A DNA stretch of 64,000 bases, from assembly GCF_001194135.2 (NCBI RefSeq), contig NC_068982.1:192237158-192301157 (forward strand), written 5' to 3'. Below, one piece after another: positions 7,290 through 54,030 of this stretch. The DNA is from Octopus bimaculoides. Taxonomy: Eukaryota. The notes below the pieces were generated by a model. The model was not told the origin of the DNA and did no database searches. It saw nothing but the letters and a program-made list of their open reading frames with translations. The position numbers and the translations under genes were made by a program. Numbering within the stretch: position 1 is the stretch's first letter; each line of letters opens with the position of its first letter.

Positions 7290-9230
7290 GTACAGGCAAA
7301 AAGGTGGTTGGCATTCATTTTCTCATTGATTGTAGTATTTTTCTTTTGAGTTTCACATGGGTCATCTTGGTTTCTTCAAAAGCTTTCACTCCACTCTACA
7401 CTTTTGTTCACCATCCAGCTCAATCCAAAGCAAGGGTTTCTACAGCCTTTAGATCCATTCCAAGTGACTTCGTGTTAGTCCTTATACAGTCCTTAAACTT
7501 CTTTTTAGGTTTACACTGATTGAGTTTCCTTTCTGCAAGTTTTCCAGAAAACAACTTTTTGGGTGTGTGTTCATCTGCCACTCAAACAATGTGGCCAAAC
7601 AACCCTCATTTGATTTTTCAAGATCATTGACTTGAGTGAACTGATGCCTGCAGGTGCAAGAACATCTGTGTCTGGAGTAAAAATGTCCCGTTTAATGTTT
7701 AAAATGCAGCAAACATATTTTTGGTGGAATCGTTTTCACAATTTGAAATGTCTTTCATAACATGTCCATGTTTCAGAGGAATACAACTGGGATGGTCCGA
7801 CAAACGATTTGTAAAGAGCCAATTTTGTGTTGTTATTTATGTCATTGATGTCAAACATGTGACTCCAAACCAACAAATTCTTGGGCTACCCTTCCAATTC
7901 GCAGATGTATTTTTGTGTCCAGATTTCCATCATTTTGTACAGAGCTTCCAAGGTAGATGAAAGAGTCAACAACCTCAAGTAACTTACCCTTAACAAAAAT
8001 TTTAGTGGGGTTACATAAAGCACCACATACAGGTTGATACTTCACAACTGTTTTTCTAAGTTGATGGTCAAGCCAAAATCATCACAAGCTGAGTCAAATA
8101 CAGATACAAGAGATTGCAGGTCCGTTTCAGAGAGCCTGACTAGATCGTAATCATCAGCGTATAAAAGTTCCTTAATGAGTGAAGTTAAAATCTTTGTTTT
8201 GACTTTCAGTCTGGTCAGATTAAAAACACTCCCTGTTGTTCAATATTTTAGGTAAATACCCACCTCAGAGTTTTGAAAAGCAAGTAACAACACAACAGCA
8301 AAGTCTATTGCAAAGAGAGTGGGTGCATCAAGGTCTTTACTTCATTTTCCACAGCAAAAGATTCAGAGAGCCTACTACCAAAATTAACTCTACCTTTCAT
8401 ATTTTGATGCAAAGCCCTGATCATGTTTACAATTTTTTCTGGACAACCTATTTTCTTTAGAATTAACCATAGAGTATGAGTATTTCGATTAATAGTATTA
8501 AATGCCTTGCTACAATCACCAAAACAGTGGTTTAGTGTAAGATTCTGTTCTATGCACTTTTCCTGAAATTGCCTGATAGTAAAGATACAATAAACTGTGC
8601 CACTGGATAAGTGAAAAGCCATATTGAGACTCAGACATTATATTTGGAACTACAAAGGAATTTAAGTGTTCTAACAGAATACAGGCAAGTACCTTTCCAA
8701 CTATAGACAGAAGCGAAATCCCACAAAAATTACCACACAGGTCCTTTGGGCCTGATTTATACAAGGAGACTAAAATGGCATCAATCCAGCCTTGAGGCAC
8801 TTGTTCAGTTCTCCAACAGTGACAAATTAATATATCTAAGAGTTCAAACATTCTGTCACCGGTCACCCCCATATTTCAAGAGCTCTGCACAGGTTTCATC
8901 TGACCCCGGAGACTCATTGTTATTCAGCTTATTCACGACTAAATAAATGTCATTTAGAGTTGGTTCAAATGCCATCTCCTTTATAACTGGAAGGTGTTTG
9001 AGTATTTCTACTATTCATAAGTGCCTGTGCAGATGAATATTTTTTCAGAAGGTATAACTTGCACTGCACTACTCCCAAGAAGACTTTCACCAGTGTAGCA
9101 TGAGAATTGACAAACCAAGAACTCCCAAGGGCTCAGATTTCATTTCGGAGATTTCCTTCTCCTAGATTGAGTACCAACCTAGGTTAAAGAGCTTCTACCT
9201 GCCCATGAGCTAGGCTATCCCATGCCAGAT
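7290..9230 (-). mobile_element. RTE LINE (decayed ORF2) with a 5'UTR-like end near 9090-9230
   Basis: WRTEQVPQGWIDAILVSLYKSG..GISLLSIVGKVLACILLEHL, SESQYGF, DCSKAFNTIN, LEVVDSFIYLGS in track ORFs 8516-8872, 8305-8622 and 7851-8045. Confidence 0.85.
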
Positions 9231-21924: not shown

Positions 21925-23385
21925 GTGTAGAATGGGAAGAAATGCACTCTGGTGACATCACGCTTTGGTTCGCCCAGCTGGACACTTATTTTTCGGCCCA
22001 TGTGGTGTCTCTCGAACAGCAAGTAAGTTTATTGTACTGTGGGATGCCTACCCCTCTTGCACACTCAGTGAGAGATCTTATCACTGACCCACATCCAGAC
22101 GCAACTTATGTGTCCGTTAAATCTGAGGTTCTCCGACGGAACACCCAATCCGCCAACAGCAAATTCCAGATGCTGATGCAGGATGAGCACCTGGGAGACA
22201 AGACGCCATCTGGGTTTCTTCGTCGTTTACGTGAAGTCAGCGACACATCACCAGAGGACAATTCTCTGCTCAGAAAATTATTTTTCTCTCGGCTGCCGCT
22301 GAATGTCCAATCCATACTGGCCACAGTGGTCGACTCGAATTCGCTTGACCAGTTAGCCACCATGGTGGACAAAATTATTGAGTTCACTGTGCAGCCTGCA
22401 CCTCATCATACCTGTTCAGACACAGCAGTAGCTTCCTCTACTACTGTTAAGCCCACTCCCTTGTCACATGACGACATTTTGGAGAGAGTCGATGCGTTAG
22501 CACGTCGCATGGACACATTGTGGTGAGAGCACGCCAGCTCTCGTTGTCCTCACAGCAGAATCCGTTCTAAGTCACAGTCAACTAGGTCTACTCCAATGGG
22601 TTCTAATCTCTGCTGGTACCATGCCACCTTCAAGGAGAAAGCCCATTGTTGCATCCAACCATGTTCGTTCCAGTTGTCGGGAAACTAGTTACGGAAGATA
22701 TGAGCATGTCAGACTCTTCCCGCAAATTCTCATCTAATCGTGCATTCTTTGTTAAGGATCGTGTGCCTGGCAAAGCATTTATGGTTGACACTGGATCCAG
22801 CTGTGTTATTTGGCCTTTGCGTTTTACTTCAGACAAGCCAAAGCAATCTGCCATCAACCTGTACGCAGTGAATCTATCTATGATAAAAACTTTCAGTCCA
22901 TCATTTTTTGTCGCCCCCCCCCCACTGGTGACCAGTTCCACTCCTTTTTGGCTTCTTTCCCAGAGCTGGTGGATCCGACTTTCAAATCAAAGTCACTCAC
23001 TCAACTCGCCATTATATCACTACTTCTGAACCACCCCTTTTTTCGTGTCGACGGCGACTCGCTCCTGATTGGCTCAAAAAGGCTCATTCTGAGTTTGAAT
23101 ATATGCTTCAACTCAGCCTTATTCACCCCTCCACCAGCCCTTCGGCATCTCCTCTACATTTGGCAAGGAAAGGGGATTCAGACTTTCACCCGGTGGGGGA
23201 TTACAGACGTTTAAATGCAGTCACTGTTCCCGATCGCTATCCTATAAGGAATCTCCAGGATTTTTCTTCAAACTTGCATAATTGTACCATTTTATTCCAA
23301 GGTTGACCTCATCCAGGCTTATCATCAGATTCCAATGAACCCTGACGACATTCCCAAAACTGCCGTTATCATCCCCTTTGGAAGT
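21925..23385 (+). mobile_element. Gypsy LTR-retrotransposon relic (CsRn1/Kabuki-like): gag, CWYH finger, aspartic protease, partial RT; internally deleted and 3'-truncated
   Basis: Gag ORF 21942-22526 (LWFAQ..VRDLI..HLGDKTPSGFLRRL); CWYHATFKEKAHCCIQPCSF; FMVDTGS; SPLHL..GDYRRLNAVTVPDRYPI; AYHQIPM.PDDIPKTAVIIPFG. No LTR pair seen. Confidence 0.9.
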
Positions 23386-24900
23386 GTTGGCCCTGATATA
23401 GGATATCCCAGTCTATTATAGCCCAGGAAAGTTTACACTGTATTTTTCTATTGATTAAATGGTGTATGTGGTGAGCTAGTGATGTGAAATTGCTATTCGC
23501 TTTATATTCAAATGAGTTAAAATGGGCATAATACCTTTGTTTAAAATCGCTGCTAGAACCAATGTAGTAGCTACAGGAGTTATCTACTATGTTGTGAACA
23601 GTGCATTGGTATACGACGTTGAATCTTTTGCATTGGGCAATCTGTCCTGGATCTGTAGTTGCAGTTATCAGTTCTATGATGGCTAATTGGAGAGAGAGAG
23701 AGATGAGGCAGTGCTGGTAATGACAAGGGTTAGGGTTAGGCTTAGGTGAATCAATCATGATATTGCTCTTATTATTGCTGTCATTTCTAGTATCGATATC
23801 AATGCCAGCATTACCATTATTATTTATTATTACGTCATTATCGTTATCGGTGTTGCTGTTGTAATTATTATCATTAGTAGTAGTAGTAGTAGTATTGGTG
23901 GTAGTAGTCGTAGTAGTATTAGCAGAAATAGTAGTAGTAGCATCTTAGGTAGTAGTGTTAGTATTAGTGGTGGTAGAGGAGGTGGTAGAGTAGTGTTAGT
24001 ATTAGTGGTGGTAGAGGAGCTGTTTGTGGTAGGAGTATTAGTAATAGTCCGATTTTCAGTAATGGTAACATTGCCATTGGTGTTAGTATTAATATTGTTG
24101 CTATTCCTATCAGTAGTTGAAGTCATCATCATCATCATCATCATCATCATCGTTTAATGTCCACTTTCCATGCTGGCATGGGTTGGACGATTTGACTGGC
24201 TGCACCAGGCTCCAATCTGATCTGGCAGAGTTTCTACAGCTGGGTGCCCTTCCTAACGCCAACCCCTCCCAGAGTGTAGTGAGTGCTTTTATGGGCCAGT
24301 CAGGCGTATATGTATTATTAGTTGCAGTGGTTATAATATAATTATAATATAATTATAATATAATTAGTATCAGTGTGCCTATTAGTGTTTGCGTCCGTTT
24401 CAGGTGTGTGCCTGTTACCCTCAGAAGTGGGCATTATGTTATTTATGTTTAAGTTGTTTAAAGTAGTCGGGCCATGGGGTGTTAGATATGTTGTTGCGAT
24501 TGGTGTTGGTGTTTTCATTGTGTTGGTCTATGGTAGGGTTGTATGCATTTAGATAATAAGAGCTAAGTTAACATTTATTAGATGAGGTGATAACAGATTC
24601 TATATTTGGTGTAGATAATAATAGTAAACTGTGAACCCACAATGATATTTTAAGGGTCCCTGAAAAAATTTTGATTTAAATGTATTGCAAGAAACAGGTT
24701 TCTTTCTTTCTACAGAGTTCAAACTACACAAGGGAATATGTGAAAAACAAAATAGGAATTTTGAATGAAGTTTTTATTAAACTAGTTTTTAAATATCAAA
24801 AGGTTAGGGGATTCACAGTGTACTATTTTCTATATTTTGGGGCCATGAGCCCTTCTTCAGGACATGTGGAAAAGTGAAAAATGAATACTTTGAATTGCTG
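23386..24900 (-). mobile_element. Penelope-like element fragment (pLTR-like end, linker, GIY-YIG) interrupted by microsatellites and an RTE tail
   Basis: YYIGSSSDFKQRYYAHFNSF..TSLAHHIH (ORF 23369-23758); TLKISL..STPNIESVITS linker near 24590-24660; decayed hammerhead motif at 24826-24865. Confidence 0.65.
24125..24300 (-). mobile_element. RTE 3' UTR copy
   Basis: (CAT)n followed by cgtttaatgtccactttccatgctggcatggg. Confidence 0.85.
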
Positions 24901-31561: not shown

Positions 31562-31613
<52 letters not shown>

Positions 31614-33003
31614 TTACAAATACAGATAAACACGGAGGAAATAGTTGAGCTTGAGAATGAATTATAAAAATAAAAATAAATGTTGCCACAATAAATATGA
31701 AATCTCACACAGATTGTCAAGGAGAACTCCCAGAATAAAAATTTGGAAGAGAGAACATTCTGACACAATTTAAGAACAGATCATACTTTTAGGTTCTATG
31801 GTTGTTGTGGGAAAAAAACAAAAACCATTTACAATACACAAACACAGTTTTGGTATCACTACAGCAGCATTAACCTATTTTGAAGTAAAACTTTTCAAAC
31901 ATTTCATTTCAATCTCCACTGCCCCTCCCTCCAAATACTTCCAAGTTGCCAAAGTCACTGGCAACTGTTCGGCTAAAGGGTTGTGATTACTGCTCAAAGA
32001 ATTTACCCAGGATTCCAAAAGCAGGAGAATATTGAAGAGAGATTCCATTTTGTATTAGGGAAGCAAAATGGAAATTATTAAGTTTTTCTTTTTTTTTTTA
32101 AATCATAAAAACCTGGTTGGAATGTCCCTATATTCAACAAGACTGACGACTACTGAATGATTCTGTAAAGTTCACTAAATGCATAGCATTGAAGATAAAA
32201 CAAAATCGATAAAGTTCTAAGAGAAAAGAAAACAAGACTCTTTGTTCTTAACTTTTGCATCAAAAAATGTCCAATCTCAGCAGATTTGTTTGTTCAGTGA
32301 AATTCCTTTAAATGTTGTTGTTGTTGTTGTTGTAGTAAAATGAGACAACTTGAGTTTGGCATTTAATATAATCAGTGATATACCATGCACGTATATAAAA
32401 GTTCAAGACAGGATATCATATGTCATGATTCCAAAAGATTTTTCTTACTGATATCAAGGAAAAGGAGTGGAAGATAAATACACACACACACACACACACA
32501 CACAATCTGTTGCAGCCATTTGTAAAAAAAAAAAAATGTTCTGAAAATGTTGGTGAAATAAATTGAAAAAAGACTAAAATTCATTAATGAATCTGAAGAA
32601 GGAAAAAAATCACAGTTTTCTGAAAACAGCCACGACAAAAAAAGAAGGAATGAAATATTTGGTAAATTAATGAATTGACGCTTTTGTTTAGTTTTTATAC
32701 ATTATAAAGAAACATGTAAAGTCATGATTTTGATCAGCATAAAGCAGTTGTAAAGAAAAGGAGGGGTAGAAAGATGGACATGGAAAATATACAATGAATT
32801 CAGCAAAAAACATGAGCAGCTTTTAAATTTCCTAAACAACAAAGATAGCTTACTATCGTAAAGGTTGAAATTTTTAAAAAAACTGTCTTCAGCAATTAAT
32901 GTCATTTGTTTTTAAATTGTCACTGTGGAGAAATAAACTAAAACAATTTCTTTTCACAAACTTCTCTTATTTATTTATTTATTAAGATGGCTTCTCCAGA
33001 ATG

Positions 33004-33012
33004 ACTCACCTC
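33004..33012 (-). other. Consensus splice donor GAG|GTGAGT, 72 nt downstream of the stop of the large ORF
   Basis: Forward actcacctc at 33004-33012; exon would end at 33010. Confidence 0.55.
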
Positions 33013-33081
33013 AATCTTCAAAAGGAAGAAGTGAGGACCAAGTGGAGGAGAGTGTTTAGATTTGGAGAGGATAGTTGCAGT

Positions 33082-36000
33082 TTATGGAGGCAAAGACACT
33101 GCACATTGAAGTAAATTAGCAGCATTTTCACTGCCTGTTAAACACTTCTTCAGTTGTGGTAAAACATTATCTGCAACTAATAACATGTCATCTGTCTCAA
33201 CATGAGGTAGACTATCGTTTAACTTTAATAAAAAACTACTTTGCGACAAGGAACATTTCTGTACTGCAATATTGTGATAGAGAAGTTTGTCAAACACTGT
33301 GGAAGATATCCATGAAGGATTGACATCACTCAGAAGAAAATATCTCTCTCCATTGTGCTCAATAAATCTTACAACTCTATTACTTAGCTGTGTCATTCCT
33401 CCCAAAATGAATTCTTTGTCTGGAGATGGTGAGCTGATAGACACAGCCTTGTTCTGATCCTTATCAGAATCAGTTTGTCCGTTGGGTTGTTCACTGTTTA
33501 GTTCATAATTTGACAGGGGAACAGAATCACAGAGACCTGGCAAAGAAGAGGAAGTTTGTATACCATCAGATGGAGATTTGAAAACCCCATTTGAGCAATT
33601 TAGACTTAATGATGACCCCAAAACATTTGTTTCCAAATCTACTGACGATGGACATTTGTCTGGAATTGGATGCTCTGTAGAATCTTTATGTGACAGACAA
33701 GTTTTTAACGTACCATAAAGTGTTAAAGAATTATGTAAGTCAGTCTCCATATCTGCATTATATTTAAAACTTTCTGCTGACGGTTCAAATATGCCTGACA
33801 CTGGCCGCTTCGGTGGTTTACGATATAAATTGCAGCATTCTAGTTTTGTCAATGAACCTGGCTCTGCTGGAGATTGTTGGCAGAGACAAGAGCATTTATA
33901 ACCCGTTTTATGTAAAGATTCGACCGGATTCTCCCTGGCAGACACAAATGTATTTTGTTCAGTTTTTTCTCCCAAACCTTCAGACCATTTAGGATCAAAA
34001 ACACCCGTATTATCTGGATCCCAGTCTTGGACACATTTTACAAGCTTACATTCTTTAAAACTATAGAAGAAATGATAGAGGAGTTCTGCATCAGACAATA
34101 ACATGATACCAAGTGGCGTCGCTCGATTACCATTGAAGACCAGACTAGATTCTAAAAGGTACTTCAAGGCAAAAGACCTCATATAATGTGGCAGCTCTAA
34201 GTAAGGTAAACTATAGTCTCTATATTTAGTCCGATAAAACACAGTTTGATTTTTGCCAAGAAAACATTTTTGAACAACTTCTCGGACAATAACATATTTT
34301 TTTACATTAATGACTACACAGAGGAGTTTGTGACCATGGAACTTGACAAATTTATGAATGATAGAATGAGGAGGAGTATTGCTCACTTGAGAATAGCAAC
34401 TCCCGCTGAAAGCATGAGTCACACATCCAGTGAAATTAAGGTCTGTTTGATTTTGCTTGTCATGAAATGAACTGGGATCTTCATGATGCTGTATCAAATG
34501 TGGAGAAGTGAAAACACGGCCATATCTGACAGGACAACTCATTAAAATTCTATTATGCAGGGTTTGTAAATCATATTTTAATGGCAGGGGCAGTTGAAAG
34601 GGGTTTCCTGGTGAAAGCTGATTTTCAACAAATAATGTTTCAATGTGGTTTTCTCTTATATTTTCACAAGACTTGACCTCCTGAAACGACTTTTTATTTA
34701 CACATTTAGTTCTTTTCTTAAAACTAGTGCAGAATTTCTTTAGCAAACGACTCTTCCTTACTTGTTTGGACCATTTGAATTTCCTCGGTTGGGGTTTAGC
34801 AACTAAAGACAATGAATTTAAGATTCCTTGGCTTTTAACATCTTTGTGCTTTTCATTTTTTTTGTCTGAGTATAAAGTCTTGGGAATTTTATCAGGGTAC
34901 AGAGCTTTGAAGTCTGTGATTGTTTTGCATAATTTCACTTCACAGGAAGGAAGAGGAAACAAAGGATTGCACTGATTGTTTTTCGTGGTTGGTTTTGAAT
35001 TACTTTTAACAGGTTTCCGTAATGGTTCACCAACAGCAGAAGAGTCACAAATCCTTTCACTGATGAAACCACAGCTACTGACAGACACTATTTCACCATT
35101 CTTTGTTTTCGTGACAACCTCTTTGCAAGATTTGTCCAATAAATCTGATGGAACTACCACAGATGTCTTGGCTGACTTCTCTTTACTCAGAATCTTGTCA
35201 TTGTCTGTTTGTACTGGTTCTTCTGGTCTGGACATCACAGAGGATTTGCAACCATCAGAAATGTCAACCGATGTTTCATTCTTGGCCAATTCCATTGAAC
35301 AACTTTCTGTAACAGGACACACAATGACATCAGCATGAACAGTATCTTTTAATAAATGCTCAGATTTGGTCAAATTTGACAGATTATCACTAACAGGTTC
35401 TTCATAGTCAGTTACTATGGCAACAATATTTATATCCCCATTCTCACTGACCTCCAAGCACGGAGCTTTGTTCAAGTCTTCCAATTCTTCAATAACACAG
35501 ATTTTCTTGGAAAGATTTAAGAAATTCATTTCAGATTGATGAACCACAGTCACTTGGTCCTGTTTCTCATTATCTTTGACTTGTTTCTCATTATTAATCA
35601 ATTGAAAGATATCACCTGCAGCAACATTATCGAGTTTCTTTGGAGCAATTTCGGTTAAGCAACTACCAACAACAATTTCATTTGGTTGCTGTTCCTGCTG
35701 TTGTTGTTGTTGTTGTTGTTCTGGTGGTGGTGGTGGTGGTGGTGGTGGTGGTAACTGTTGTAGTTGTGGGGACTGCTTTTGTTGTGGTGGCTGTGGTTGT
35801 TGTAGTTGGGGTGACTGTTGTTGTTGTTGTTGTTCTTGCTGTAGTTTTGTTTTTAACTCTTGCAATTCTTCTTGTGTTTGTTGTTTTTGAAGCTGTCTTA
35901 AGTTTGGTTGTTGTTGTTGTTGTGACAGTTGAGATCCCTCCTCCTCCTCCTCCTCCCCTAGTTGTGATGAAACAACAGCAGCAATGATGCCTGGTGATGT

Positions 36001-39000
36001 TCGGGCTGTCCAAGCATCTTCTTTCACATCTTTCAGCACAATTAGTTTATCACTGGTTTTCTCTTCAACAGGAAGTTTAGGGTTTGTTTTGTGACCACCA
36101 TCAGCACCACCACCACAACCCTCACCATCATCATCACCATCATCATCACCACTATCATCACCATCAGTATTGTTGTTGTTGTTGTTGTAAGTTTTGAAAT
36201 GTTCAACAGAGTTTGGTGCTTCAGTTTCAGATCTGGGACAGAAACTTTCATCCAAAACATGTTTATCCTTTTGGAAACTATTGAATTGGTTCTTCTGTTT
36301 CCAATATTTGGAATTCCCAGCCGTTCGAGCACAGTCTTTCTCCTTATTTTCTATTCCTTCCTTCTTATTCTCCTCCGTTCCCATTGTCAGTCTAGCCTCA
36401 GATTTCTCGATCCCTACTTGACAGTTCTTGGTGATTACACTGTTCTTTCCAGTCTCGTTACTTAAGGAAACAAACTTTTTGGAAGTTGCCAACTCATTTT
36501 CGCATGCTAATAGAGCCTTCTCTAACAAACTTTGACCTTTTCTGCGCTGACGGCCGTCATTGGTTGATGGTTTGACAGGACAATATGGAGCATAGACAGC
36601 AGACGCTTCTGAGAGGGTCTTGAAATCTGATTTTATAGAGATTTCATCATTGGTAAAATTAGTAGATGGACTTCGGTCAGGACTTGGTAACAAACACACA
36701 GTGGAATTAATGCTACTCTCATCACTGGAAACCAATTGAGATAAATCTTCTTTTACAGTTGATTCCACATCAGATTTCTGCTGGTCATCCTGAAGTTTAA
36801 CTGGTGATTTACATGATTCAAATTCCTTTTGTTTGATTTTCACCCAAGAAGAATTGGTAATTTCAACATCTGGATTAGCATCGGTTAATAATTTTCTGGT
36901 ATTAATAGATTTGTCTAATGATGAATTAGTGGAATTTGAATTCTCTTTTAAAACAGAAACTTTTGACAATGGAGAAAATGGTTGTATTCCTGGACTGACC
37001 TTATCTTCCATAATGGTAAAAACAATTTCTTTCTCCAGAGTTCTTTCTCCAAAAGAGTCGTTGTTTTCTGTCGCTTTGGAATTGATGCTTGTGTTTTTCA
37101 AAGAGTCCATAGAACTTTCAGCAGTACTTAGAGTGTCGACTGATTGCCTTGAATGAATCACAGATTTCGGTGCCATCGTTTCGCCAGCTTGAACTCCGTC
37201 AGAATCATCAGTGTCATCCAGTGTGACACACTTTTCATTGTTAACACTTTTCCCATGACGGTTAATTGTCCTGCGTTCAACTTGTCTCTCCTCAGGCCAA
37301 CACTTCCACATTTTGTCGTTTGTCTCCACTGGACTTTGATTTGAGCTCGAATTAGACAAAGAATGTAAAATATCTACGATATCACAGTATTCTGGAGCAT
37401 TGTTGCTGCTGTTGGTTTTGTCAAAAAATTTATCAGTTTGGTTAGCACCTAGCGATTTATTAGTTATAGAGGCAGGGATATAGTTCTTGGCAGAAGATTC
37501 ATAGTTGTTGCCTAATAATTTGTTCATTGACTCTGGAGGCCAACAGGAAGTATCTTCATCCAGTTCCAAGTTCTCCCGCTTGCGTGGCTCGTATTTTTTA
37601 CGTTTTGATCTACTTTCCAGCTTTAATCTGTAGTCCTGAACAATGTCCGTCGATAAAAGATTCTCTTTTTGATTGTCTTCAAGGCTGACATTTATAATGT
37701 CTGGCAACCTACGCTTTTTTGTGACGTTACTAGCACCAGTTGCTGCTATCAGGTCTTTTGATCTGTGAGGAACACCAGACAAAGATAAAGAGTAGGAACT
37801 GGTGATCACCAAGTCACAAGGAGTTTCGTCGTTTTGGTGGTTGGCTTTTTCAACAACAGAAGATCGGGGTCGCGCAAGAGCAGAGGGAGCAGAGACAGAA
37901 GGAGCGGAAAGATTGGGAGCAGAGACTGTGGGAGGGGCAGAAATAGTAGGAGTAGTAACAATAAGAGCAGGAGGAGGAAGAGATGGTGGTGGCGGTGGTG
38001 GTGGTGGTGGTGGTGGAGGTGGTGATGGAGAAGAGTCAGTGTCTCTGGACAAATCTATTACATCTTCGATTATATGATGATTATGTTTTGAAAATGAGGA
38101 ATTCAATGCCATGATATGGTGTTTCTTGGGAAGATGACTAAGGGTAGACTGACTACTAGACGTCACCTGAATATGGTTCTGTTGGTTAGAATTAGTAGTT
38201 AAAATATCAGAAATCACAGATTCTGAACTAGTTGTCTTTGAGCTCTTATTGAGTTTTGATTCATTTTGATGTTTTTTCATGAGCCTTTTGAGAAAATATT
38301 CAGCAAAGTTATTTGAAGAATTTGAAGAAGTGACAGAATCTGGAAGACAGTTGGAAGATTTTGAAGAATTTGAAGTTGACAGTTTGGTACAATTAAAATT
38401 GTTTGTAATAATAGCAGGATTTTCAAAGTTATTTGGTTTGTTTGGCACTGTACTTTCAACCCCACCTAAGTTCCCAGTTTTTTCATTGTCCTTTGTAAGT
38501 TTCTCTTTTTTCGTCTGTGGTGGTGGTGGGCTTTTTTCAGGCATTTTGTACCAAGACCTGCGTGTCACTGACCCGCCACACACCGATGTCGTTGTTTCAC
38601 ATTTTTGTACAACAGTTTTCTCAATGAAATTAAGGTCTGCATGGATGTGATTGCCAACTGGATGCAGACAGTCAATGTTTTCTAACTGAGTGGGTGGCAT
38701 GACCACAGGCAGCTCTGGTAGTGGAATGTCATTTGGATAGCGTGTATACCAGCCCCGAAGGTTGGCAGGGGTAGTAGGGTGTACAGAACCAAGAATAGGG
38801 TCTACTAATGAGCTGTGGGGTTGTGTTACAGATGGTAAATTAAAGGAAGGTGGAGGGACACGGTTAGTGACTCTACAGGGATATGACTGTTGAGGTGAAA
38901 GAACATTACCATTTGTAACAGAATGGTTTAACCATCCACCAGGAGGAGGCCAACCAGTCCAGGGGGGCGCTCGTGGTGACCAATTGATGTTATTGTAACA

Positions 39001-39162
39001 TGTACGATCTGGCACAAATGGAGGGGCCAGACCAGCATAGTAACCCATTGTTTGATGGTAATGAGAAATTTGAGTTGTGAATACATTCTCCTCTAACTGT
39101 AACCGGCTGTTACTGCGTCTTCGCTCTTTCTTAGAATGAGGTTCTTCATTTCTCGAAGACAT
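33082..39162 (-). CDS. 2026-aa putative nuclear protein encoded by one exon; low-complexity body and two C-terminal Ski/Sno/Dach-like domains
   Basis: 6,081-nt stop-free ORF in AT-rich DNA; in-frame stops upstream of the ATG; acceptor 61 nt upstream; basic NLS-like clusters. Domain similarity judged by manual alignment only. Confidence 0.93.
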   Translation of the reverse strand: MSSRNEEPHSKKERRRSNSRLQLEENVFTTQISHYHQTMGYYAGLAPPFVPDRTCYNNINWSPRAPPWTGWPPPGGWLNHSVTNGNVLSPQQSYPCRVTNRVPPPSFNLPSVTQPHSSLVDPILGSVHPTTPANLRGWYTRYPNDIPLPELPVVMPPTQLENIDCLHPVGNHIHADLNFIEKTVVQKCETTTSVCGGSVTRRSWYKMPEKSPPPPQTKKEKLTKDNEKTGNLGGVESTVPNKPNNFENPAIITNNFNCTKLSTSNSSKSSNCLPDSVTSSNSSNNFAEYFLKRLMKKHQNESKLNKSSKTTSSESVISDILTTNSNQQNHIQVTSSSQSTLSHLPKKHHIMALNSSFSKHNHHIIEDVIDLSRDTDSSPSPPPPPPPPPPPPPSLPPPALIVTTPTISAPPTVSAPNLSAPSVSAPSALARPRSSVVEKANHQNDETPCDLVITSSYSLSLSGVPHRSKDLIAATGASNVTKKRRLPDIINVSLEDNQKENLLSTDIVQDYRLKLESRSKRKKYEPRKRENLELDEDTSCWPPESMNKLLGNNYESSAKNYIPASITNKSLGANQTDKFFDKTNSSNNAPEYCDIVDILHSLSNSSSNQSPVETNDKMWKCWPEERQVERRTINRHGKSVNNEKCVTLDDTDDSDGVQAGETMAPKSVIHSRQSVDTLSTAESSMDSLKNTSINSKATENNDSFGERTLEKEIVFTIMEDKVSPGIQPFSPLSKVSVLKENSNSTNSSLDKSINTRKLLTDANPDVEITNSSWVKIKQKEFESCKSPVKLQDDQQKSDVESTVKEDLSQLVSSDESSINSTVCLLPSPDRSPSTNFTNDEISIKSDFKTLSEASAVYAPYCPVKPSTNDGRQRRKGQSLLEKALLACENELATSKKFVSLSNETGKNSVITKNCQVGIEKSEARLTMGTEENKKEGIENKEKDCARTAGNSKYWKQKNQFNSFQKDKHVLDESFCPRSETEAPNSVEHFKTYNNNNNNTDGDDSGDDDGDDDGEGCGGGADGGHKTNPKLPVEEKTSDKLIVLKDVKEDAWTARTSPGIIAAVVSSQLGEEEEEEGSQLSQQQQQPNLRQLQKQQTQEELQELKTKLQQEQQQQQQSPQLQQPQPPQQKQSPQLQQLPPPPPPPPPPEQQQQQQQQEQQPNEIVVGSCLTEIAPKKLDNVAAGDIFQLINNEKQVKDNEKQDQVTVVHQSEMNFLNLSKKICVIEELEDLNKAPCLEVSENGDINIVAIVTDYEEPVSDNLSNLTKSEHLLKDTVHADVIVCPVTESCSMELAKNETSVDISDGCKSSVMSRPEEPVQTDNDKILSKEKSAKTSVVVPSDLLDKSCKEVVTKTKNGEIVSVSSCGFISERICDSSAVGEPLRKPVKSNSKPTTKNNQCNPLFPLPSCEVKLCKTITDFKALYPDKIPKTLYSDKKNEKHKDVKSQGILNSLSLVAKPQPRKFKWSKQVRKSRLLKKFCTSFKKRTKCVNKKSFQEVKSCENIRENHIETLFVENQLSPGNPFQLPLPLKYDLQTLHNRILMSCPVRYGRVFTSPHLIQHHEDPSSFHDKQNQTDLNFTGCVTHAFSGSCYSQVSNTPPHSIIHKFVKFHGHKLLCVVINVKKYVIVREVVQKCFLGKNQTVFYRTKYRDYSLPYLELPHYMRSFALKYLLESSLVFNGNRATPLGIMLLSDAELLYHFFYSFKECKLVKCVQDWDPDNTGVFDPKWSEGLGEKTEQNTFVSARENPVESLHKTGYKCSCLCQQSPAEPGSLTKLECCNLYRKPPKRPVSGIFEPSAESFKYNADMETDLHNSLTLYGTLKTCLSHKDSTEHPIPDKCPSSVDLETNVLGSSLSLNCSNGVFKSPSDGIQTSSSLPGLCDSVPLSNYELNSEQPNGQTDSDKDQNKAVSISSPSPDKEFILGGMTQLSNRVVRFIEHNGERYFLLSDVNPSWISSTVFDKLLYHNIAVQKCSLSQSSFLLKLNDSLPHVETDDMLLVADNVLPQLKKCLTGSENAANLLQCAVSLPP

Positions 39163-39223: not shown

Positions 39224-39245
39224 CTGAAAGAGAAAAGAAACTAAA
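39224..39245 (-). other. Splice acceptor of the ~6.2-kb exon (tttcttttctctttcag|G, exon starts at 39223)
   Basis: Long polypyrimidine tract plus CAG. Confidence 0.75.
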
Positions 39246-42124: not shown

Positions 42125-43010
42125 ATCATCATCATCATCATCGTTGTTTAACGTCCGCTTTCCATGCTAGCATGGGTTGGACGATTTGACTGAGGACTGG
42201 TGAAACCAGATAGCTACACCAGGCTCCAATCTGATCTGGCAGAGTTTCTACAGCTGGATGCCCTTCCTAACGCCAACCACTCCGAGAGTGTAGTAGGTGC
42301 TTTTATGTGCCACCTGCAAAAAGGCCAGTCAGGCGGTACTGGCAATGGCCACGCTCAAAATGGTGTATTTTACGTGCCACCTGCACAAGAGCCAGTTTGG
42401 CGGCACTGGCAACGATCTCGCTCGAATGTCTTTACACGTGCCATCTGGCACAAGTGCCAGGAAGGCGATGCTGGGTACAGGTGCCATTGATGGTTTCGCT
42501 TTCGCTTGCCCCAATAAGTCTTCGCAAGCCCATTGACGGTTTCCAATGAAGGAGATGATGTTGGCATGGGTGCCAGTCGTCGAATTTAATTCGATTTCGA
42601 TTTCACTTGCCTCAACAGGTCTTCGCAAGCGGAGTTTAGTGTCCAATGAAGGAAGGTACGTATAAGTGGGCTGCCTGAGGCTTTCGATTTTGGTCTCACT
42701 TGGCTTGCCTGGTCTTCTCACGCACAACATATTTCCAAAGGTCTCGGTCAGAAGTCATCGCCTCGGTGAGGCCCAATGTTTGAAGGTCGTGCCTCACCAC
42801 CTCATCCCAGGTCTTCCTGGGCCTACCTCTTCCACAGGTTCCCTCCACTGCTAGGGTGTGGCACTTTTTCACACAGCTATCCTCATCCATTCTTGCTACA
42901 TGATCATACCAGCGCAATCGTCTTTCTTGCACACCACAACTGATGCTTCGTAAGTTCAACTTTTCTCTCAAGGTACTTACACTTTGTCTAGTATGCACAC
43001 AGTTATAGTA
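42125..43010 (-). mobile_element. RTE 3' fragment (RT C-terminus + 3' UTR)
   Basis: ORF 42696-43034 LRWYDHVARM..RGRPRKTWDEVVRHDL; (CAT)n tail at 42127-42142. Confidence 0.9.
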
Positions 43011-43436
43011 GAAGAGCTTTATCCAAGGTGCCACGCCAAGGTACTGAAACAGAAACCATATGGATGGGAAGCAAACTCCTTAAGCACAGAATCATGCCTC
43101 ATCTTGAACAAAACGGTAATGAGAAGCAGGCCAACCTAACAACGTATCATAGCAAAGAAAAAAGAAAAAAAGACCCCAAACAATTTCACAACTTTATAAG
43201 ATAGACACACAATTTACTTCTCTAGTTGAGGTCAATAACCTATAGAAGACTGTAGCAGAAGGAATAGCAAAACAGGTTAAACTGAGGTAAACTGAGAATG
43301 GACAGATAAATATCTTGGTGGAAAAGAGCGAGGGGGGGGGGTGAGTCAAGTTTAGTTCCTTAAAGAAAGGGATACTAAAGAAACAGTAGAAAGAGAATAT
43401 AATGTGAAGAAGGGGAAAAAAGAAGATTAAATGCTG

Positions 43437-52344: not shown

Positions 52345-54030
52345 ACCACCAGATAAGGGATTGGGGATCTGGTCCCTTATCTGGTGGTCAATGCAGAAAC
52401 AAGGGATGGATGAGTGATTGGTGAGAGCTGTACAAGCCATGTACAGGGATGCTGTCAGTAAGGTGAGGGTTGGCAATGAGTATAGTCAAGAATTCCAGGT
52501 AGAAGTAGGGGTTCAACAAGGATCAGTCCTCTGCCCCCTTTTATTCATCAAAGTCCTCCAGGCAATAACAGAGGAATTCAAGACGGGCTGCTCCTGGGAA
52601 CTCTTCTATGCTGATGACCTTGCTCTAACAGTTGAGTCACTACCAGAACTACAAGAAAATTTTCAGGCGTGGAAGCAAGGTCTAGAATCAAAGGGCTTTA
52701 GAGTGAATCTAGCAAAACCAAAGTCCTAGTAAGTAGGAAAGCAGACAAATCACAAATCCTTTCAAGTAGATGGCCCTGCTCAATCTGTAGGAAAGGTGTA
52801 AGTAGAAATTCCATAAGATGCACCAAGTGTAAGCTTTGGACACATACAAGGTGCAGCAATATCAAAGGAAGGTTAACTGGGAAAATAGTTTTTGTGTGTG
52901 GCAGATGCACTGGGGCAATAAACATCAAAGATGTACAGAAAACAGATTCCATCAGATGCCAGGGGAAAAACTAGAAATAGTTGATAGCTTCTGTTACCTA
53001 GGTGACCAAGTCTGTAGCGGGGGTGGTTGCACTGAAAGTGTAGCAACTAGAGTAAGAATAGCCTGGGCAAAGTTCAGGGAGTTCCTACCTCTGCTAGCAA
53101 CTAAAGGCCTCTTGCTCAGGATGAAAGGTAGACTGTATGATGCATGTGTGCGAACTGCCATGCTACACGGCAGTGAAACATGGGCCGTGACTGTGGAGGA
53201 CATGCGTAGGCTGGAAAGAAATGAAGCTGGCGTGATCCGCTGGATGTATAATGTCAGTGTGCACACACGAGAGAGTGTAAGTGCCCTGAGAGAAAAGTTG
53301 GGTATAAGAAGCATCGGATGTGGCATGCAAGAGAGACATTTGTGTTGGTATGGTCATGTACTATGGATGGACGCGGAGAGCTGTGTGAAGAAGTGCTACT
53401 CCCAAACAGTGGAAGGAATCCGGGGTAGAGGTAGACCCAGGAAGACATGGGATGAGGTGGTGAAGCATGACCTTCAAATTTTGGGCCTCAGAGAGGCAAT
53501 GACGATAGACCAAGATGTCTGGAGATATGCTGTGACTGCAAAGACCCGGCAAATAAAGTGAGTTTACAGCTGTAACCTACACCAGTGTTGCATAACCAGC
53601 CCCAGCCCACTCAAAAGTACCTTGAATCGTAGGGCAACATGCTGTGCTTGAAGAGACCTATTGAGTCAAGAACATCAACATCAAATGGAAATTGTAGTTG
53701 TGATCCCTCTGCTGGTGGCACATAAAAAGCACCATCCAAACATGGCAGATGCCAGCACCGCCTTGACTGGCTTCCGTGCCAGTGACACGTAAAAAGCACC
53801 AACTGATCGTGGTCATTGCCAGCCTCCTCTGGCCCCTGTGCTGATGGCACGTAAAAAGCACCTACTACACTCTGAGTGGTTGGCGTTAGGAAGGGCATCC
53901 AGCTGTAGAAACATTGCCAGATCAGACTGGAGCCTGGTGCAGCCTCCTGGCTTCCCAGACCCCAGTCAAACCATCCAACCCATGCCAGCATGGAAAATGG
54001 ACATTAAATGATGATGATGATGATGATGAA
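52345..54030 (+). mobile_element. RTE LINE 3' part (RT through 3' UTR and (GAT)n tail); longest copy in the window, frameshifted
   Basis: GVQQGSVLCPLLF, LFYADDLAL, VDSFCYLG, AMLHGSETWAVT, RGRPRKTWDEVVKHDL; stop at 53561, then UTR. Confidence 0.92.

Follow-up and report, generated by a model that had tools for sequence, protein, structure and literature searches.

In the genome of Octopus bimaculoides a stretch of 64,000 nucleotides (nt; contig NC_068982.1, here called the window) carries on its minus strand an open reading frame (ORF) at positions 33082-39162, the product of which has 2026 amino acids (aa). We consider it probable that this protein is the octopus member of an unnamed mollusc family, in which a long, largely disordered chain with short conserved motifs ends in two divergent winged helices of the Dachshund homology domain (DHD) type, and that it serves as a nuclear chromatin scaffold or co-regulator. 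The gene is real and under selection, and the family as well as its architecture are conserved. For both C-terminal domains, termed A and B, a DHD fold is predicted by structural modeling.

A preliminary description, drawn from the DNA letters alone, had placed two ordered segments near the C-terminus. This was borne out by AlphaFold2 models and by the lack of low-entropy sequence in either segment. Domain A (aa 1602-1713; 34024-34359, minus strand) was modeled as aa 1590-1730 from an alignment of 10 sequences (A1), with a mean predicted local distance difference test score (pLDDT) of 79.7 and a predicted template-modeling score (pTM) of 0.74. Domain B (aa 1920-2009; 33136-33405, minus strand) was modeled as aa 1908-2026 from an alignment of 11 sequences (A2), with a mean pLDDT of 82.3 and a pTM of 0.71. 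The secondary structure elements followed in the same order in both models, β1-β2-β3-α1-α2-β4-α3-β5-α4. In the DHD fold the 'wing' is made of β4 and β5, with α3 placed within its loop, and α2 serves as the 'recognition' helix (PMC2944819; PMC4509781). Both models matched this published topology including α3 in the wing, and this extra helix in the wing loop is what characterizes the group of DHD-like winged helices.

The models were compared with the PDB by Foldseek. With domain A, ranks 1-12 were all DHDs (1l8r, 3eq5, 1sbx). The template-modeling (TM) scores were 0.66-0.72 by target length and 0.48-0.54 by query length, the root-mean-square deviation (rmsd) was 2.6-3.7 Å over 90-103 columns, and E-values ranged from 2e-3 to 5e-2. 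With domain B, DHDs (3eq5, 1l8r, 1sbx) accounted for 12 of the 13 top matches (TM 0.61-0.71 by target and 0.50-0.60 by query length; rmsd about 3 Å, one chain 4.6 Å; E 1e-3 to 3e-2). The sole other entry among the 13 was a granulovirus Orf22 domain (TM by query length 0.42, rmsd 9.1 Å). For either domain every DHD match had a Foldseek probability of 1.00. Below the DHDs both lists contained, at probabilities of 0.47 or less, Mbp1/PCG2 (APSES), the PUFD of BCOR/BCORL1, the winged helix of SMARCB1 and XPA. The same structural neighborhood has been described for the 'DHD-like winged helix' of metazoan chromatin proteins (Allen et al., 2015; PMC4509781). We predict with good confidence that both C-terminal segments adopt a DHD-like fold.

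The two domains have distinct sets of conserved residues. Invariant in domain A were F1608-H1609-G1610 and the cysteines C1705 and C1710, which form a C-x(3,4)-C pair; C1615 was present in nine of ten orthologues. These His/Cys residues are encoded at 34033-34050 and 34315-34338 and have no counterpart in the DHDs of SKI, SnoN or DACH1. Conceivably, H1609, C1615, C1705 and C1710 could form a site for zinc or another metal. In domain B, G1921-G1922, R1932, D1946 and C1970 were invariant. Further, the domains differed in net charge, which reflects a binding surface only crudely: domain A had a basic character in every one of the ten orthologues (net +6 to +12, pI 9.2-9.8; octopus 9.5), whereas domain B was mostly neutral to acidic across the family (net -8 to +3, pI 4.6-8.7; octopus 6.3). 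The corresponding pI values of the reference DHDs are 9.1 for DACH1, 4.8 for SKI and 5.1 for SKIL. A positive surface of DACH1 has been tied to DNA binding and a neutral surface of Ski/SnoN to protein binding (PMC2944819).

Relatives were sought by an exhaustive phmmer search with the last 652 residues as a query against 1.84 billion representatives. Twelve true relatives were obtained plus one spurious Sushi-repeat protein. Those with species names came from Octopus sinensis, O. vulgaris, Mizuhopecten yessoensis, Mytilus californianus, Crassostrea/Magallana gigas, Saccostrea and Haliotis rubra, and they are either called 'uncharacterized' or mis-named. Full-length relatives were found only in molluscs, i.e. 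in cephalopods, scallop, mussel, oysters and abalone, and had both C-terminal segments in the same order. Because cephalopods, bivalves and a gastropod are represented, the family is at least mollusc-wide and not cephalopod-specific; in this respect the earlier suggestion of a possibly lineage-specific co-regulator needed correction. Between cephalopods and the other classes only short motifs could be aligned outside of domains A and B. Bivalve and gastropod genes possess introns. A 5-kb exon of the scallop gene (L004) encodes aa 114-1788 and a single exon of the abalone gene (L005) aa 1-1230, in each case with both domains. Therefore, the giant exon is ancestral. In the bivalve and gastropod orthologues (P0005, P0007, P0008, P0011, P0022) small downstream exons add a coiled-coil tail at the C-terminus. 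The cephalopod proteins are without it, and a counterpart looked for in the 64-kb window was not found. Run-assembly contigs of about 5.3 kb from Logan, which are probably transcripts, hold complete ORFs of bivalve-type members. The family has no name beyond 'uncharacterized', in keeping with the preliminary description, which had recognized no named gene, and no member has a Pfam domain; a Pfam scan of six full-length homologues gave nothing relevant. Likewise, a literature search on six RefSeq LOC identifiers of the family found nothing relevant. In a word-indexed protein search two queries, the 626-aa C-terminus and the alignment of domain A, were without a match; this search also missed the window's own product and its 93%-identical orthologue, both of which are in the collection, and does not indicate absence.

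Several observations weigh against the proposed reading. The Pfam family Ski_Sno (PF02437) did not match even at E<=10, neither with the whole protein nor with four pieces of it, six homologues or 21 domain sequences. Searches of the PDB by phmmer and by profile hmmsearch returned no DHD chain, only chance matches (TTK kinase, PP2A B56). The CLPQ motif at the β3/α1 junction, which is invariant in SKI, SKIL and DACH1, is absent from both domains; by model position it is replaced by VIVRE in A and by FLLSD in B (FPFED in bivalves). An hhalign comparison of domain A with domain B detected no similarity (P=0.47). The AlphaFold2 models were built on shallow alignments, the Foldseek E-values were modest (1e-3 to 5e-2), TM by query length was only 0.48-0.60, and the charge argument shares the crudeness of its measure. 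Finally, in view of the coiled-coil tail outside of cephalopods the mechanism may differ between mollusc classes. A recent internal duplication which gave rise to A and B was considered and rejected on the hhalign result.

A direct comparison with canonical DHDs was carried out by hhalign. The reference profile consisted of no more than three PDB sequences (SKI, SKIL and DACH1) and is very thin. Against it domain A scored P=4.7e-4 at a probability of 33% over 52 columns from α2 to α4, with the segment 'G-I-M-L-L-S-D-A-E-L-L-Y' aligned to 'G-L-I-T-K-T-D-A-E-R-L-C'. Domain B scored P=0.025 at a probability of 2% over 72 columns. Both alignments were weak but in register with the fold. They hint, not decisively, that A and B may each be nearer to a canonical DHD than to one another. 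The canonical DHD architecture was not matched either, as neither c-SKI_SMAD_bind nor another partner domain was found in the Pfam scan. Because Ski_Sno did not match and CLPQ is missing, the claim is made at the level of the fold only and membership in the family is not demonstrated. Homology to the Ski/Dach family is plausible. Thus, the earlier assignment of two Ski/Dach domains stood as far as the fold is concerned, with DHDs of DACH1, SnoN and SKI as top Foldseek matches, and fell short in sequence, in the missing Ski_Sno match and the missing CLPQ. Of the checks then proposed, HMMER with Ski_Sno was null and AlphaFold with Foldseek gave DHDs as top matches of both domains.

Could A and B instead be DNA-binding domains of the Bro-N/KilA-N/APSES type, possibly an old capture from a virus or mobile element, with a resemblance to DHDs due only to closeness of the folds? 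Such domains also begin with a β-hairpin followed by helices. When domain B was run by Foldseek against predicted viral structures (BFVD), it matched many Bro-N, KilA-N, Ant/anti-repressor and baculovirus BRO proteins at probabilities of 0.9-1.0 and E-values to 8e-4, and in the PDB lists Mbp1 (APSES) and PCG2 come after the DHDs. Profile scans gave weak, sub-threshold hints in the first β-hairpin, P22_AR_N for domain A (E=0.18-0.21) and the anti-repressor phrog_2593 for domain B (E=0.39). By eye we take the first hairpin of either domain, and a 'V-R-F-I-x-x-x-G-E-x-Y-F' pattern, to be like the Bro-N hairpin. However, the viral superpositions of domain B had TM scores by query length of 0.29-0.51 and rmsd values of 5-18 Å, compared with 0.50-0.60 and about 3 Å on DHDs, and Mbp1 in the PDB fitted domain A with a TM of 0.33 by query length and an rmsd of 7.8 Å. 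No Bro-N/KilA-N-type family of Pfam or PHROG was significant in the 21 domain sequences; P22_AR_N reached 12 bits against a cut-off of 30.7 bits, and it and phrog_2593 were each matched by a single member. A scan of 2.9 million viral contigs with the domain A profile disclosed no relatives. The extra wing helix α3 of the models is the mark of DHD-like domains, and a stable orthologue across mollusc classes, with introns in bivalves and gastropods, argues against viral or mobile capture. We consider a Bro-N/KilA-N/APSES origin of the domains unlikely and retain the DHD-like assignment.

A different objection concerns novelty: the protein might be a fast-evolving mollusc orthologue of a named bilaterian chromatin protein with a DHD-like domain (SKIDA1, BCOR/BCORL1, DNTTIP1 or a Ski/Dach paralogue) that sequence divergence has made unrecognizable, and neither family nor architecture would then be truly new. 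BCOR-type proteins are likewise long and disordered, with the PUFD at the C-terminus. The DHD-like fold is recurrent in several metazoan chromatin proteins (PMC4509781). The exhaustive search was made with one divergent cephalopod query and could miss distant orthologues outside of molluscs. Against this, Pfam recorded no match to Ski_Sno, c-SKI_SMAD_bind, BCOR, PUFD, Ank or DUF4584, the Foldseek fit of the BCOR(L1) PUFD was poor (TM 0.28-0.38, rmsd 7-13 Å), and none of SKIDA1, BCOR/BCORL1, DNTTIP1 and Ski/Dach has two DHD-like domains. In SKIDA1 a single DHD at the N-terminus is joined by a C-terminal PRC2-binding region, and an early-vertebrate origin was reported (PMC8864842). A hidden orthologue of this kind is improbable in our view, and the proposal of an unnamed family with two DHD-like domains is upheld.

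The ORF itself starts with an ATG at 39160-39162 and terminates with a TAA at 33082-33084 (6,081 nt; 2026 codons plus the stop). The next longest ORF in the window has 241 aa. Based on the stop-codon frequency in the window (0.060), ln P for 2026 stop-free codons is about -125, which excludes a chance ORF. An identical 2026-aa product is a called gene, without Pfam annotation, in the O. bimaculoides assembly GCA_001194135.2, where it is located some 0.2 Mb from the end of chromosome CM046602.1. The orthologue of O. sinensis (LOC118762189, 'uncharacterized protein') is 94% identical and also maps near a chromosome end, at a distance of about 2 Mb. The gene spans 6195 nt, which is the length of the coding sequence (CDS; 2064 codons and the stop), and therefore it too has a single coding exon. 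Between the three RefSeq isoforms there is a difference of only 11-12 residues, in frame, within an Asn/Asp/Gly low-complexity patch. The O. vulgaris orthologue is divided at the poly-Gln tract into two annotated 'hypothetical' proteins, P0015 of 1108 aa and P0016 of 821 aa; most likely this is an assembly or annotation artefact at the repeat. A second cephalopod sequence (P0002) is more distant, with an overall identity of 38%, and has an uninterrupted ORF of 5742 nt.

Selection was estimated according to Nei-Gojobori between O. bimaculoides and O. sinensis. The ratio of non-synonymous to synonymous rates (dN/dS) was 0.22 for the whole CDS, with a dS of 0.13, and all 16 indels were multiples of three; the selection is purifying. 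Residues 1-210 had 14 synonymous and no non-synonymous changes; dN/dS was 0.06 for aa 211-600, 0.04 for domain A, 0.74 for the poly-Gln tract and 0.89 for aa 1401-1595. By these substitution rates the N-terminal 600 residues are strongly constrained, and the N-terminal 1,550 are more than mere low-complexity filler. Although the window is rich in retroelement fragments and microsatellites and trinucleotide repeats make up parts of the CDS, the view that the ORF is a pseudogene, belongs to a transposon or virus, or is a chance frame in repetitive DNA is effectively refuted by the value of ln P, by a dN/dS of 0.22 that is near 0 in three regions, by indels that are in frame throughout, by orthologues at matching chromosome ends in two Octopus species, by a family in three mollusc classes with bivalve-type complete ORFs on the probable transcripts, and by the lack of reverse transcriptase, integrase, transposase or capsid domains in Pfam. 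Judged from sequence, one exon carries the entire CDS, and the gene is genuine and functional.

The exon is opened by a putative 3' splice acceptor (39224-39241, minus strand), a polypyrimidine tract with the AG at 39225-39224. The motif reads TTTCTTTTCTCTTTCAG/G and is identical in O. sinensis. Between acceptor and ATG is a 5' untranslated region (UTR) of about 61 nt which contains in-frame stops; therefore, the CDS begins within the giant exon. At the other end, 72 nt past the stop codon, is a donor-like motif, GAG/GTGAGT (33003-33012, minus strand; GT at 33009-33008). The equivalent in O. sinensis is GAG/TTGAGT, with TT in place of GT, and the motif is probably not a conserved splice site. 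For this reason, and as the AATAAA downstream of it is kept, we regard the donor as unproven, and a functional 3'UTR intron starting there was rejected because the GT is not conserved. Accordingly, the preliminary description was right about the stop-free ORF in one exon and about the acceptor motif at 39224, and its 'strong donor' at 33009 is present in this species but not conserved in O. sinensis. A cluster of AATAAA-type candidate polyadenylation signals (AATAAATAAATAAATAA) is located about 100 nt past the stop (32967-32983, minus strand). The first AATAAA (32983-32978), about 25 nt beyond the donor-like motif, is conserved in O. sinensis. The message may end near 32960 or run on further. 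The 1.5 kb downstream of the stop (31580-33081, minus strand) are 95% identical between O. bimaculoides and O. sinensis. This exceeds the expectation from the dS of 0.13 in the CDS, and a message running past about 32960 is conceivable for that reason; the identity suggests a long conserved 3'UTR or regulatory sequence.

The part of the protein ahead of the two domains had been described as about 1,550 residues of low-complexity or disordered chain. This was partly correct: 32% of aa 1-1550 was low-entropy, with Ser/Asn runs, 13 prolines and poly-Asn/Asp-Gly and poly-Glu/Gln/Pro stretches, but the N-terminal third is strongly constrained. The N-terminal region (aa 1-210; 38533-39162, minus strand) is rich in Pro, Trp and Tyr, has a basic KKERRR cluster near its start (aa 11-16) and is highly constrained within cephalopods, with 62-85% identity to P0002 over most of its length. 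It contains the signature motif WYKMP (aa 204-208; 38539-38553, minus strand). Each of the 11 members examined had a single occurrence of the family pattern W[YC][KR]xP, always far N-terminal of domain A. Next, IIEDVIDLSRDTDSS (aa 364-378; 38029-38073, minus strand) consists of a hydrophobic core and an acidic/Ser tail and is directly followed by a run of 13 prolines. It is conserved in O. sinensis and P0002 and by its pattern resembles a SUMO-interaction motif (SIM), so that SUMO might be bound there. A further short motif, LVITSSYSL (aa 451-459; 37786-37812, minus strand), has its pattern also in O. sinensis, P0002 and scallop (IRILDTFSL); by eye, similar strings are ISIINCFTL in P0006 and LYIVNTYSL in a mussel protein.

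An acidic Ser/Thr cluster, VTLDDTDDSDG (aa 646-656; 37195-37227, minus strand), is conserved among cephalopods and belongs to a block in which the two cephalopod lineages are 72% identical. In bivalve orthologues a similar block, (D/E)SDATIPY, is found in the region that separates A from B, and VVDLT(T/V)DD follows B in some of them. The poly-Glu/poly-Gln/poly-Pro tract (aa 1056-1173; 35644-35997, minus strand) consists of imperfect trinucleotide repeats with several larger in-frame indels. Ahead of domain A is a Lys/Arg-rich, strongly basic stretch of 44 residues (aa 1456-1499; 34666-34797, minus strand), a candidate nuclear localization signal (NLS) or nucleic-acid contact; P0002 and P0006 have, by eye, comparable Lys-rich stretches at this place. 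Further basic clusters are KKRR (aa 482-485) and KRKKYEPRKR (aa 520-529).

How might such a protein work? The following is drawn by functional analogy with DACH1, Ski/SnoN, BCOR, DNTTIP1 and INI1. The NLS-like basic clusters, the poly-Gln tract and the basic domain A are indirect hints at a nuclear location on chromatin, and the basic clusters would mediate nuclear import. Domain A, with its basic, DACH1-like charge and its His/Cys set, may contact DNA or nucleosomes together with the preceding Lys/Arg-rich stretch. Domain B, mostly neutral or acidic and similar in charge to SKI/SnoN, would dock a protein partner. The disordered region might recruit further factors via the W[YC][KR]xP, SIM-like and acidic motifs, possibly dependent on SUMO, and the whole would have a regulatory role. 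A more far-reaching proposal, which we put forward only tentatively and consider rather doubtful, is a mollusc-wide, possibly lophotrochozoan, family of chromatin regulators that is the first with a tandem-DHD architecture. In it, two winged helices of ancient divergence would share the work: domain A, possibly with zinc, would read DNA or nucleosomes, B would recruit a partner, and the W[YC][KR]xP and SIM-like motifs would assemble a repressive or SUMO-dependent complex.

With these data, structure and function become approachable for the first time in a conserved protein of more than 1,200-2,000 residues which is annotated as 'uncharacterized' in every mollusc genome examined. They place a Dachshund/Ski-type winged helix, as predicted, in a new context, i.e. 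in two copies, at the C-terminus, without CLPQ and in one copy with a conserved His/Cys set. This would mean that lineage-restricted derivatives of the DHD fold exist which are invisible to sequence profiles, whereas the fold was previously tied to a few bilaterian co-regulators. If the division into a DNA-binding and a partner-binding domain is true, the protein offers a tractable entry into mollusc-specific chromatin regulation, cephalopods included. We rate the importance as moderate because no long-standing open question is addressed.

In the remainder of the window, a 176-aa ORF on the plus strand (2139-2669) matches with its first 50 residues the C-terminal end of a CFAP161-like domain (PF24569) with an E-value of 1.6e-5, narrowly short of the cut-off. 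Probably a neighboring cilia/flagella gene on the opposite strand has its last coding exon here. Decayed pieces of mobile elements are present at 21942-23758, 8516-8872, 42696-43034 and 52836-53561. One ORF resembles the gag-like DUF7041 (E=3e-9), and the ORF that follows it contains 'VDTGSS', a motif like that of retropepsins. On the other strand is an ORF with a weak GIY-YIG match (E=1.5e-3), and a reverse transcriptase-like fragment is present as well. Two ORFs share a 'RGRPRKTWDEVV' tail, which is typical of elements without long terminal repeats (non-LTR). Runs of N, i.e. assembly gaps, at about 11.0-11.3, 28.6-28.9, 30.3-30.85 and 61.65-62.2 kb are flanked by microsatellites, and none touches the gene. 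Between 16000 and 18300 a strong GC-skew spike of +0.43 and long Ser/Leu- and Ile-rich pseudo-ORFs are due to dense microsatellite and simple-repeat DNA.

Among known systems DachBox-N of DACH1 (PDB 1L8R) was the best or a near-best match, with TM scores by target length of 0.69-0.70 for A and 0.65-0.70 for B and an rmsd of 2.8-3.5 Å over 94-99 columns at the same topology. Its basic DHD resembles domain A in pI. Identity to the octopus domains is only 14-21%, however, and these lack the CLPQ of DACH1. DACH1 has one DHD near the N-terminus plus DachBox-C; the octopus protein has two DHD-like domains at the C-terminus and no DachBox-C. SKI and SnoN (1SBX, 3EQ5) furnished the remaining top matches of both domains (TM by target length 0.61-0.72). 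Their DHDs are neutral or acidic as is domain B, and the hhalign alignments kept the register, also across the segment 'G-[LI]-I-x-x-x-D-A-x-x-L' in domain A, while sequence similarity to the octopus domains was under the thresholds of profile searches. In Ski and SnoN the one DHD, at the N-terminus, is accompanied by a coiled coil and by a SAND-like domain that binds Smad4 (PMC2944819); neither partner was detected in the octopus protein by Pfam.

SKIDA1 is comparable in concept. It is a long low-complexity protein in which the DHD is the only recognizable fold, it is a proposed tether of PRC2.1 (PMC8864842), and it thus sets a precedent for a DHD on a disordered scaffold. It differs by its one N-terminal DHD, by a C-terminal PRC2-binding region shared with EPOP and by its reported status as a vertebrate innovation (PMC8864842). 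Sequence similarity of the octopus protein to SKIDA1 was not detected, and orthology was rejected since the order of the domains does not fit and the octopus protein has no PRC2-binding C-terminus. The PUFD of BCOR/BCORL1, the N-terminus of SMARCB1/INI1 and DNTTIP1 are in the same DHD-like neighborhood, all winged helices with the extra wing helix (PMC4509781). The PUFD and SMARCB1 were lower in the Foldseek lists (TM 0.28-0.48, rmsd 6-13 Å), no Pfam family of this group was matched and none of its members has two modules. As a long disordered co-repressor with a DHD-like PUFD at the extreme C-terminus, BCOR offers an analogy in layout. A BCOR-like reading was rejected because the PUFD superposed poorly and no ANK or BCOR match was obtained in Pfam.

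That Ski, SnoN, Dach and SKIDA1 each possess a single N-terminal DHD (PMC2944819; PMC8864842) agrees with what the preliminary description had taken as established. In a literature search neither a tandem arrangement nor a C-terminal pair of DHDs was found to have been reported, in keeping with its view that the architecture is apparently new. The fold itself and the logic of a DHD on a disordered co-regulator were already known. New are the family, the double C-terminal arrangement of DHD-like domains, the loss of CLPQ and the His/Cys set.

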